Made by a program: the position numbers and the translations under genes. The notes beneath the pieces were generated by a model. It searched no databases. It saw nothing but the letters and a program-made list of their open reading frames with translations, and had not been told where the DNA came from. Positions 3,401 through 6,849 of a stretch of DNA of 64,000 nt are shown here, piece by piece. This DNA is from Podarcis filfolensis (lineage: Eukaryota). The first letter of the stretch is position 1. Each line of letters opens with the position of its first letter. The stretch lies in NCBI GenBank assembly GCA_964270895.1, contig OZ185446.1, one strand, 5' to 3'.

Positions 3401-5179
3401 TCACACTGTAGTTTCCCCTTGCTTACTGTTGGTGAGTCTGCTATAGAACTTCCTCCAGGAATTGAGTGTTTTCCCAGACCAGATCCAAAAGCCAGAAGTG
3501 ATGCCTACAATTAAAGTCATGAGATACTTGATCATAAAGACGGTGAAGTCAGGACTCATGGGCGGATGGTGGTGGTTACTGGGGCAAGGGATGGCATAGC
3601 TCTTGCAGCTTTGAGCAAACCAACTCCTTTCCCACTGTTCCCTAAATGCTTGCTCGTAAAAATAGCAGGCAATGACTATGGTAGCAGGCACTGTGTACAG
3701 GACGCTGAAGATCCCTATCCTAACCATCAGCTTTTCCAGCTTCTCTGTCTTGGTACCGTCGTGTTTCATGATGGTCCGAATTCTGAAAAGGGAGACAAAT
3801 CCAGCCAGGAGGAAAGAAGTGCCAATGAACAAGTAAACAAACAAAGGAGCCAGCACAAAGCCCCGCAGGGCATCCACATTGTTGATGCCCACAAAGCAGA
3901 CGCCACTCAGCACATCCCCATCCACCTGCCCCAGAGCCAAGATGGTGATGGTTTTGATAGCGGGCACAGCCCAAGCAGCCAGGTGGAAGTACTGGGAGTT
4001 GGNNNNNNNNNNNNNNNNNNNNNNNNNNNNNNNNNNNNNNNNNNNNNNNNNNNNNNNNNNNNNNNNNNNNNNNNNNNNNNNNNNNNNNNNNNNNNNNNNN
4101 NNNNNNNNNNNNNNNNNNNNNNNNNNNNNNNNNNTCGTGCCCTGTGCCACCGTCCGCGAGCCATCGTCGGAGAAGCGCTCGTTGCACACCACCTTCTCCT
4201 CCAGCAGGAACCCTGCAATGTAGGCCACCGCCACCGCCGTGTAGCAGCCCGAGAGGAAGATGATGGGTCTCTCCGGGTAGCTGAAGCGCTTCATGTCCAC
4301 CAGGTAGGTCAGCACGGTGAAGAGGGTGGAGGCGCAGCACAGCACCGACCAGATGCCAATCCAGGTGCGGGAGAAGCGCAGCTCCTCCTGCCCGAAGTAC
4401 ATGAGCCCGTAGGGGCGCCCAGACTCGCAGGGCGCCCCGCAATCCTTCTCGCCCAGGAAGCGGTAGTTGAGGTAGGAGGGCACCTTGAGCACCCGGGGGC
4501 AGGTGAACCTGCCCGCCCGCTCCGCCAGGTGGCTCCCTCCGCCCCCGCCTCCTGCCACGCCGCCGCCGCCGGGCCGCAGCTGCGGGTTGCTGGTCCAGAA
4601 CTCGGGTCCCAGCGAGGGCGTGGGCGTGCCGCGCTCGGAGGTGTTTTGGCCCACGCAGAGCTCTTCGGCGCCGTGCACGGGGAACTTCTCGCNNNNNNNN
4701 NNNNNNNNNNNNNNNNNNNNNNNNNNNNNNNNNNNNNNNNNNNNNNNNNNNNNNNNNNNNNNNNNNNNNNNNNNNNNNNNNNNNNNNNNNNNNNNNNNNN
4801 NNNNNNNNNNNNNNNNNNNNNNNNNNNNNNNNNNNNNNNNNNNNNNNNNNNNNNNCTGCACCTTGACGAGCGGGTAGAACTGGTGCACCTCCAGGCCCGC
4901 GTCCTCCTGGTTAGTGTGGCCCAGCAAGTTGGGCATGATGGTCTGGTTGTACGCGATGTCCGTGCACAGGGGGATGGTGATGGGCTGGCAGTAGCCGTGG
5001 TCCGGTACCGAGATGCCCCGCTCGCCGTTGTACTGCTGCTGCTGCCCCAGAGCGGGAAGCATCGGCGCCTCCGTGCACAGCAGCAGTAGCAGCAGCAGCG
5101 GCGGGGAGAGAGCGCCGGCCCGGCTGCCCCTCTCCGCCTCGGCCCCGCTGCAAACTTGCCGAGTCCACTTCTCTGCCAT
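3401..5179 (-). CDS. FZD1: Frizzled-1, single-exon 7TM Wnt receptor (592 codons, two internal N blocks)
   Basis: Signal peptide, CRD ([45 protein letters not shown]), Frizzled TM motifs ([35 protein letters not shown]), KTLNSW (KTxxxW) and a C-terminal SKQGETTV. That tail matches FZD1 rather than FZD2 (SRHGETTV) or FZD7 (SSKGETAV). The ATG is in a strong context (aagtATGg). Confidence 0.97.
4003..4134. other. N block 1 (132 N) inside the FZD1 CDS
   Basis: Run of n. With its 3 flanking bases it spans exactly 45 codons. Confidence 0.99.
4693..4855. other. N block 2 (163 N) inside the FZD1 CRD
   Basis: Run of n. With its 2 flanking bases it spans exactly 55 codons. Confidence 0.99.
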
Positions 5180-5451
5180 ACTTCGCCGGGTCCTCTGGCT
5201 GCTGCTCCTGCCGCCGCCGCCTCCCTGTCCAGGTCCCTCCTGCTGCTGCTTCTACCGCCGCCTTTCACCTCCTCTCCTGCCAGGTCAAACTTGAGCCTCC
5301 TGCAGGGGAGGCTGCAAGGAAGAGGAGGACGGCGAGGGCCACCCCGCGAGCACGTCCCTCCGCCGCGCCGCCAGCGCGCTCTGCGCTCTCTCTCTCTCGC
5401 CTGCCAGGCAGAGCGCGCCAGCTCCAGCTCTTGCTGCTGCTGCTGCTGCTG

Positions 5452-5502
5452 CTACCGCCGCCTTTTCTTCTTCTTTCTCCGCCACCGCTGCCGCCTGACC
5501 AT
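5452..5502 (-). other. Upstream ORF in the FZD1 5' leader, MVRRQRWRRKKKKRRR*
   Basis: Hand translation of atg gtc agg cgg cag cgg tgg cgg aga aag aag aag aaa agg cgg cgg tag. It is the only ATG between 5520 and the main ATG. Translation is not demonstrated. Confidence 0.6.
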
Positions 5503-6849
5503 TTGTGGCAATCCCTCAAGCCCTCTCTCCCTCGAACCGGTTTCCAGGCGCCCCGCAGTCTGCCTTTCACCAGAAGGGAGGAGCCTTGAAACCGACGCCT
5601 AAGTTTTCCCTGCGTCAGGGACCGTCGCCCAACATCACTCCCCGCTCCCAAGCGCAGGAGGAGGCGGAGGTCGTCCGATACGGTTTCTCTCTCTCCGCCC
5701 TCCCTCCCGCCTCGCTCCTCCTCCAACTTCTCCTCCAGGACACGAGGGGGAGGGGGGAGGAGGCCAGGCTTGGTGGGTTTTGCCTTAAAAAGAAGAATAG
5801 ACCCATATGCTGTGTGAGCAGCTAATGAATAGGAGGGAGCAGACAATTGCTTTTTTCCCCTTTCTACGCCTAAAAATTCGGTGGTTCGCATTTTAATAAA
5901 ATGCAAAAAGGGGGGCAGGAGAAGACTTAAGGCAAGGACGTATGTTTGTGAATTAGAGCAAAGTTTTAGAGCATCGCAACTTGGAGGTAGACGCTCGTTT
6001 GCTGAGCAGCTTTCAATAAAACAAAAAACGACAAAACCCTCAACCACCAAAAACTCTTCACTTGAAATGATTGTAACCTGACGCAGGGAAGTCTTTACAG
6101 GCGGCCTCTTGGCGCGCCTTACTCAGCGCTCTCTTCCCAGCCTCCCGCCCTTAAATACACTTGTAAAGTCGACATGAAACGATTATGTTTTTTTTTTTTA
6201 AAAAAATGAAGCAAACATTAAGTCAGTTTCTTCCCAGAAATTAACATTTAAAATGACAGCTGTTCCCTCCCTCCTTCCCTCCACCCATCCATCCATCCAA
6301 GAACTTACAAAACACATCATTGCTGGAGGGACTGATGTCAGGCTGGGAGGTAAAATTGGGCAAATATCTCAAAGGATTTGAAGACCAAACCAAAATAAAA
6401 CCAAAATAAAAAACCAGGACCAACTTTTGTGGCCCATTACCTGGGTGGAATTGAGTGTGGCTGGCTTTCAAATAAACATGTGAACATGAGAAGAACCTTT
6501 ATTCCAGTGGCCCATTTATTCCAGCCAGCAGTGAATCTACATTTTGGGGGCCTTGAAGCTTGAACTGTAACCAGGCCACTTCTCAACCAGCAACAAGGTC
6601 TGGGTAACCACTGTTATCTTCTTCAGTAGGGTTGTTCCATGACAGATCACCACTACTGACTCTCTAACTTTGGGATTGTTGAAATACAGTAAACAAACAA
6701 ACAAAAAACGCCCCAGTTTGAATTGTTTGACACAAATTGTGGGTGTATTAATGTTGTATTAATGGGTGTATTAATGTTAAGCAATGAGGACTAAACGTTG
6801 AGCAATGAGGACTAAAATCACTTCTGGGGCCCCTCTGGGATTAAGGGTC

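Follow-up and report, generated by a model that had tools for sequence, protein, structure and literature searches.

The stretch of DNA analyzed here, which we call the window, comprises 64,000 nucleotides (nt) of contig OZ185446.1 from the lacertid lizard Podarcis filfolensis (assembly GCA_964270895.1). Our subject is the 5' leader of the frizzled-1 gene, FZD1, which lies on the minus strand of the window, as do all the features described below. The FZD1 coding sequence (CDS; 3401..5179) is a single unbroken open reading frame (ORF) of 592 amino acids, in which two N-masked stretches were left unfilled. The gene was identified as the FZD1 ortholog by its top matches, which are squamate frizzled-1 proteins (87-100% identity), and by the domains PF01392 and PF01534; residues 160-345 are 100% identical to frizzled-1 of Podarcis raffonei, and the 2.5 kb upstream of the gene is 96.3% identical between the two species. 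The main ATG at 5179 has A at -3 and G at +4 and is preceded by a leader of 342 nt with 69% GC. Within this leader lies an AUG with an in-frame stop codon upstream of the main start codon, the arrangement that defines an upstream ORF (uORF). This element, uORF1 (5452..5502), would encode a short and highly basic peptide, and its ATG, reading frame and basic run are kept across the amniotes examined.

The 16 codons of uORF1 (MVRRQRWRRKKKKRRR) run from the ATG at 5502-5500 to the TAG at 5454-5452 and read ATG GTC AGG CGG CAG CGG TGG CGG AGA AAG AAG AAG AAA AGG CGG CGG TAG. Eight Arg and four Lys make 12 of the 16 residues (75%) basic. The basic tract proper, codons 3-16 (5455..5496), holds 12 Arg/Lys among its 14 residues, with a longest unbroken run of nine; it has one AAA codon only, no more than four consecutive A's and no poly(A) tract. 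The upstream ATG (uATG) is 323 nt 5' of the FZD1 ATG and out of frame with it (323 mod 3 = 2), and 272 nt separate the uORF1 stop codon from the FZD1 ATG. These coordinates bear out an earlier sequence-only reading of the window, which had described a 16-codon frame with 12 Arg/Lys, out of frame with FZD1 and ending about 270 nt before its ATG, and had also correctly placed a G at +4. The full context, caaATGg, has C at -3 despite that G and is thus adequate rather than strong; the sequence directly preceding it is cttgagggattgccacaa (5521-5503).

How surprising such an ORF is depends on the null model. None of 5,000 dinucleotide shuffles of the 342-nt leader (0/5000) gave an ATG-initiated ORF with at least 12 basic residues in 16, but we judge this null too weak because shuffling destroys the triplet periodicity of the tract. 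A fairer one is that a CGG repeat is basic in about one-third of frames and an AAG repeat in about two-thirds. In the window the basic run does not amount to a pure microsatellite, as Tandem Repeats Finder (TRF) reports (CAG)7 only, and the other two frames across it are Gly/Ser-rich and Ala/Glu-rich. The uATG is the sole ATG of the window leader, which is unremarkable: shuffles hold 0.92 ATGs on average, and 80% of them hold 0 or 1.

We compared the window with the FZD1 loci of Podarcis raffonei, Varanus komodoensis, Rhineura floridana (an amphisbaenian), Phrynocephalus forsythii (an agamid), Spheniscus humboldti (a penguin), Carettochelys insculpta (a turtle), Dromiciops gliroides (a marsupial), Phacochoerus africanus (the warthog), Xenopus laevis and Amblyraja radiata. 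With the window included, the amniotes amount to nine sequences from eight lineages, and the non-amniotes are one frog and one skate. All nine amniote sequences carry the motif GAGGGATTG-N-CACAAATGGTCAGGC followed by ATG, and in all nine the uATG frame reads MVR and then 7 to 14 consecutive Arg/Lys. The first 9 to 16 codons are almost all Arg/Lys; the remaining two frames of these tracts give Gly-rich and Ala/Glu-rich strings. The expectation of the sequence-only reading that ATG, frame and basic charge would be kept across amniotes is thus borne out in 9/9 sequences, and the mammalian string that it had given matches the warthog and marsupial DNA (GAGTTGAGGGATTGACACAAATGGTCAGGCGGCGGCGG). The penguin uORF1 is MVRRRRRRRRRRR followed by a stop, the warthog uORF1 begins MVRRRRRRRRRRRWGE, the marsupial uORF1 has 14 consecutive Arg, and those of the turtle and the agamid have 7 each.

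At the DNA level, the lacertids, Rhineura and Varanus have had their CGG run partly swapped for AGA/AAG/AAA, which does away with the GC-rich repeat and with predicted structure, and have retained 10-12 basic residues. The other amniotes have (CGG)4-5 and AGG/AGA at this position, with (CGG)4-5 pure in the bird, turtle, agamid, marsupial and placental sequences. The codon swap with charge kept would favor charge, over RNA or DNA, as the retained property, but this evidence is suggestive only because an AAG-type repeat is basic in two of three frames by chance. The 51-nt uORF1 is 100% identical between the window and Podarcis raffonei, in contrast to the (CAG)n and (GA)n repeats beside it, whose lengths are different in the two species. 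A metagenome scan for GGATTGNCACAAATGGTC returned 61 matches, all due to chance and none with the flanking motif or the conserved block upstream of it that is described below.

A poly-arginine uORF of human FZD1 figures in a recent preprint by Hashimoto et al. (bioRxiv 10.64898/2026.08.12.739961, August 2026) on what they call translation-restricted uORFs. Starting from uORFs of 93-453 nt (31-151 codons) in human and mouse RefSeq 5' untranslated regions (5'UTRs), they retained 111 human-mouse uORFs with at least 60% amino acid identity, FZD1 among them, and expressed the uORFs as FLAG/EGFP fusions under an optimal Kozak context. Translation-restricted uORFs were enriched in basic residues and local RNA structure, and the FZD1 uORF was their "extreme example," in which deletion of the poly-arginine brought accumulation back to the control level. 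The position-dependent, N-terminal failure to accumulate in a reporter is reported for the human ortholog only. For many such uORFs a stable local RNA structure adds to the restriction, and the main ORF is translated less efficiently in genes predicted to carry restricted uORFs (10.64898/2026.08.12.739961). The data cover a tagged reporter and human-mouse conservation, not endogenous translation or FZD1 output. This preprint was the only relevant item in a literature search on FZD1 uORFs, start sites and poly-basic uORF stalling, and the literature searched contained no ribosome profiling (Ribo-seq) of FZD1.

From the length filter and the poly-Arg wording we infer that the "FZD1 uORF" of the preprint is the uORF1 ortholog, since the warthog uORF1 has 33 codons with 11 Arg. 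The other upstream frame of amniote FZD1 leaders, uORF2 (discussed below), falls outside a definition limited to 5'UTRs because it overlaps the CDS. By this identification the lizard uORF1 is the ortholog of an element already noted in human, and the sequence-only reading, which knew of no description, has been overtaken in that respect. With 12 of 16 residues, the lizard uORF1 shares the basic enrichment of translation-restricted uORFs. New here are the amniote-wide basic run, the greater age of the ATG and its motif, and the loss of a second uATG in lacertids.

The explanation that we favor is a repressive role in cis for uORF1, as a poly-basic uORF near the start site with its ATG embedded in an older DNA motif; in our estimation it could equally well prove right or wrong. 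Some scanning 43S complexes would initiate at the uATG, the first AUG that they meet, and the 80S ribosome would make a highly basic peptide that would still be inside the negatively charged exit tunnel when the stop codon arrives. Slow elongation or termination would then lessen reinitiation and block the scanners that follow, leaving fewer ribosomes to reach the FZD1 AUG 272 nt downstream. The peptide would be a by-product rather than a functional product, and the DNA motif around the uATG probably serves the promoter or start site too. Human and mouse annotation implies a start site upstream of the uATG. Given such a start site, a scanning model predicts some ribosome use, and the human reporter result in turn predicts that the basic run makes uORF1 translation unproductive. 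FZD1 is intronless, so that nonsense-mediated decay dependent on an exon junction complex would not be expected and the effect should be mainly translational. In the lizard, the uATG is presumably transcribed and used, and its use would lower FZD1 output. The translational brake that the sequence-only reading had proposed fits the restored accumulation in the human reporter, but the conservation of the region, described below, looks like that of a DNA or RNA element and not of a peptide under selection.

A bioactive micropeptide, a released Arg-rich product acting in trans through nucleolar or RNA binding, for example, had been offered by the sequence-only reading as a second possibility, and we find it very improbable. 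Arg-rich peptides bind RNA and enter nucleoli, and the MVR start and basic run are common to all amniotes examined. However, uORF1 varies from 13 to 60 codons, with unrelated and often low-complexity tails, and when conservation is judged over the whole ORF, as for a conserved-peptide uORF (CPuORF), only the MVR and a basic run of 7-14 residues prove to be common. The position of the stop codon and its frame relative to FZD1 vary as well; the stop is always at least 117 nt 5' of the main ATG, and uORF1 overlaps that ATG in none of the amniotes. The substitutions show no coding-type pattern, and even as an EGFP fusion the human product shows poor accumulation (10.64898/2026.08.12.739961).

The tract might instead act as RNA in any frame, with the (CGG)n/purine-rich sequence limiting 43S loading or scanning as a hairpin, a G-quadruplex or a protein site, which we consider unlikely. 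The retention of pure (CGG)4-5 for hundreds of millions of years, from bird, turtle and agamid to marsupial and placental, speaks for such a role, as does the contribution of local structure to restriction reported in the preprint, and the 5'-end folds of the turtle (z = -1.36) and the warthog (z = -2.17) are somewhat better than those of shuffles. Against this, the marsupial 5'-end fold has z = +1.03, and in the window an 82-nt fold of the uORF1 region has a minimum free energy of -17.6 kcal/mol, z = +0.57 and an almost unpaired centroid, by a method that does not model G-quadruplexes. The whole window leader is less structured than its shuffles (z = +1.84). The stable local structure at the uORF 5' end that characterizes translation-restricted uORFs was thus absent from the window fold, and, with no excess structure over shuffles, we rejected RNA folding as the explanation of the lizard tract. 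An Rfam scan of window positions 5100-5800 found no family near its gathering score.

The conserved sequence extends well outside uORF1. The motif 5' of the uATG (CTTGAGGGATTGCCACAA; 5503..5521) forms, together with ATGGTCAGGC, a block without variation, bar a few positions, among 8 of 8 amniote lineages; anchored at the uATG, positions -16 to +13 are almost invariant. Directly upstream lies a deeply conserved noncoding block (5527..5633), with 90.7% identity to penguin over 107 nt (5633-5527) and 86% identity to Xenopus over 57 nt (5595-5540), and partly recognizable in the skate. The block has the uATG motif at its 3' edge, and between the two runs a GA-rich spacer whose length varies. The block probably represents the proximal promoter; with a start site further 5', it would belong to an extended leader. 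The uATG and its motif are probably older than the amniotes, on the evidence of one frog and one skate; the basic run is observed in amniotes only, in 9/9 sequences and in 0/2 non-amniotes.

Two further features of the upstream block may be recorded. It contains a TGACGC motif, and at window positions 5632-5634 it holds another ATG (reading MLGDGP and a stop), which is present in the squamates and the turtle and absent in the penguin, marsupial and warthog. This ATG would open a further uORF only if transcription begins further upstream.

Conservation of this kind raises the possibility that uORF1 is incidental to a DNA element. In that case a deeply conserved CpG-island promoter would have the motif GAGGGATTG-N-CACAAATGGTCAGG at its downstream end, as a transcription factor or start-site element, the (CGG)n/(MGG)n tract would be a GC-rich triplet repeat usual in such promoters, and the ATG and Arg frame would be by-products with absent or negligible translation. 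Taken as a whole we regard this as a real possibility, if a somewhat doubtful one. The best-conserved DNA does lie upstream of the uATG, frog and skate have the motif and ATG with a short, nonbasic ORF, uORF1 has no excess of wobble-position changes, and its ATG has C at -3. A spacer of variable length between block and motif is expected of promoter modules, and an inverted CCAAT-like ATTGG is seen by eye about 130 nt upstream in mammals and the skate. Set against these points, the uORF is apparently included in the RefSeq 5'UTRs of human and mouse, in which case a scanning model has the first AUG, with its G at +4, partly used; the basic run persists in lizards where AAG/AAA/AGA have replaced CGG; and no transcription factor site was identified, the motif being, by eye, a poor match to YY1 or TISU (translation initiator of short 5'UTRs). 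We also compared the motif by eye with E-box, NF-Y and MEIS/PBX sites, and none of the five readings was convincing.

The interpretation of uORF1 as a repressive uORF has itself to be weighed against a number of observations that do not favor it. The invariant span from -16 to +13 exceeds what initiation needs, and the 107-nt upstream block is better conserved than uORF1. Nucleotide alignability among distant amniotes stops 8-10 codons into uORF1, and the extra states at codon positions 1/2/3 number 3/2/3 over codons 3-9 and 11/9/8 over codons 3-13 in the eight lineages; a coding-type excess of third-position or synonymous changes was not found, in a comparison of low power. At such high nucleotide identity, amino acid conservation and DNA conservation are inseparable, and retention of the frame is automatic because the triplet repeat abuts the invariant motif. 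The squamates show Arg-to-Gln and Arg-to-Trp changes of the CpG-transition type, and a 1-nt insertion in Phrynocephalus makes the distal part of the tract read EGAEE, with 7 Arg remaining, the number that the turtle has. The frog retains the motif and ATG GTC and reads MVGARF and a stop, with no basic run; the skate has a recognizable GACACCAATGGACAG, at lower identity, 3' of the recognizable piece of the upstream block and a nonbasic uORF of 21 codons. The preprint's uORFs were chosen by annotation, not Ribo-seq, and driven from an optimal Kozak context, and its FZD1 deletion removes RNA and peptide together. The lizard uATG has C at -3 and, should it lie only about 19 nt from the cap, may be skipped by many ribosomes. 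Lastly, sense-strand GC skew, a crude indicator of start sites, sets in near 5750 and not near 5520.

The conservation pattern as a whole points to nucleotide-level constraint rather than selection on the peptide: conservation is weighted upstream and there is no third-position excess, and peptide selection is therefore not demonstrated. The sequence-only reading had conceded that its case would fail if only a DNA motif proved to be conserved, with neither frame nor charge retained and no effect in reporters. This is partly so, given the invariant motif and the absence of a third-position excess, but frame and charge are kept in the amniotes.

The sequence-only reading had also described the uATG as the only one in the FZD1 leader. 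That is true of the window leader but not of amniotes, where a second upstream ATG, that of uORF2, is conserved in 7 of 8 lineages, 86-193 nt 5' of the main ATG. Its sequence is CTTCATGA(G/A)TC(T/G)C(A/C)AGTTT (CTTCATGAGTCTCAAGTTTGA), with T at -3 and A at +4 making a weak context, and its peptide starts MSLKF or MNRKF. In these seven lineages uORF2 is out of frame with FZD1 and overlaps or abuts the FZD1 start: in the turtle, marsupial and warthog it closes at +6 to +8 of the FZD1 ORF, in the penguin it stops 2 nt short of the main ATG, and in Varanus, Rhineura and Phrynocephalus it runs on through more than 470 nt of the CDS. The corresponding position in the window (5299..5301) is AGG instead of ATG, as it is in Podarcis raffonei. 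By comparison of the leaders, the uORF2 ATG is lost in lacertids, and the lone uATG of the window is for that reason a lacertid peculiarity.

The gap from uORF1 to uORF2 is 67-122 nt in most amniotes. In the marsupial (Dromiciops, -136) the uORF1 stop codon TGA overlaps the uORF2 ATG, as ATGA, and in Varanus (-134..-118) uORF1 is extended to 60 codons and has as its stop the TGA within the conserved AAGTTTGA, 17 nt beyond the uORF2 ATG. The frizzled-1 model of Carettochelys insculpta at NCBI, labeled "LOW QUALITY PROTEIN" (629 amino acids), starts at the uORF2 ATG (ATGAGTCTCAAG; L005:2501), 100 nt upstream of the MAE start of other species, and the translation of the locus does not match the model; it is likely an annotation artifact arising from the overlapping uORF.

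A more ambitious idea is that the amniote FZD1 leader is a two-uORF gate some 320 million years old, with a charge-braked uORF1 and a uORF2 overlapping the main AUG, so that receptor synthesis would depend on reinitiation; lacertids would have rewired this gate by losing uORF2. We think this improbable. If it were true, Wnt receptor synthesis would be tied to the capacity for reinitiation, by analogy with ATF4-type control.

The rest of the leader, from the uORF1 stop to the FZD1 ATG (5180..5451), is 272 nt of 69% GC with no ATG. The (CAG)7 microsatellite (5432-5453) starts at the stop codon of uORF1; 3' of it, at 5380-5400, is a run of (GA)n. A motif of about 26 nt, AAGGCGGCGGTAG(A)AGCAGCAGCAG, which we spotted through cross-matches to the Podarcis and Varanus leaders, occurs twice in the window leader (5437-5465 and 5240-5265); the last part of the basic run and the stop codon of uORF1 come from the first of these copies.

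FZD1 acts as a Wnt receptor and is sensitive to dose, and the translational control of Frizzled receptors has been little studied. If used, uORF1 would be a simple and conserved handle on Wnt receptor output. Because lizards changed codons (CGG to AAG/AGA) and kept charge, FZD1 uORF1 also offers a clean natural test of whether N-terminal poly-basic peptides act as brakes in cis.

Among known systems, the poly-basic or poly(A)-tract stalls sensed by ZNF598 (Hel2) and ribosome-associated quality control (RQC) likewise involve consecutive Arg/Lys codons, and a similar drag in the exit tunnel would be expected in the lizard. The lizard run differs in having nine residues, with at most four consecutive A's, at the N terminus of a 51-nt ORF. 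An ORF of that length holds two ribosomes at most, which makes ZNF598-sensed collisions doubtful, and a part for ZNF598/RQC at uORF1 is speculative. The fungal arginine attenuator peptide, the MAGDIS peptide of AMD1 and the plant CPuORFs are cis-acting nascent peptides, as we propose for uORF1. They are, however, specific peptides of constrained length with coding-type conservation, and often respond to a ligand; what the amniote uORF1 sequences have in common is charge composition only, with differing tails and no codon-position signature.

In the FMR1 CGG repeat, with its repeat-associated non-AUG (RAN) translation, and in the uN2CpolyG of NOTCH2NLC, translation of a CGG repeat occurs 5' of the main ORF, in a CpG-island leader, and can tune the output of that ORF, as may be the case for uORF1. 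Those repeats are read mainly from near-cognate starts and chiefly in the Gly frame, and they are polymorphic in length or expanded, whereas in FZD1 an AUG fixes the Arg frame and the 4-5 repeat units are stable and, in lizards, partly replaced by AAG/AGA. The TISU/YY1 element (SAASATGGCGGC) resembles the uORF1 motif in having an ATG with G at +4 near the presumed start site, followed by GGCGGC. By eye, however, ACAAATGGTCAG does not match SAASATGGCGGC: the window sequence ACAAATGGTCAGGCGGC fits the A at -2 and the G at +4 only, and the GCCAT core of YY1 is absent. TISU moreover drives the main ORF of mRNAs with short leaders, and the FZD1 motif carries a uORF. Like the delayed-reinitiation leaders of ATF4 and ATF5, most amniote FZD1 leaders have a short uORF1 and, 3' of it, an out-of-frame uORF2 overlapping or abutting the main AUG. 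In FZD1, however, the uORF2 context is weak, in Varanus and the marsupial the start of uORF2 lies within uORF1 or its stop codon, and the lizard has no uORF2.

The poly-arginine uORF of human and mouse FZD1 (Hashimoto et al.) differs from the lizard uORF1 in several respects. The lizard element has 16 codons, compared with the 31-151 codons of that screen, mixes Lys with Arg, is interrupted by Q and W, and lacks the predicted local RNA structure of the preprint's class; the amniote-wide distribution and the older ATG do not appear in the preprint, which reports human-mouse conservation only. Both belong to the same gene and carry their basic content at the N terminus and, to judge from the warthog and marsupial (MVRRRRRRRRRRR...), the human and mouse uORF would share with that of the lizard the same ATG, the same motif and the same Arg frame.

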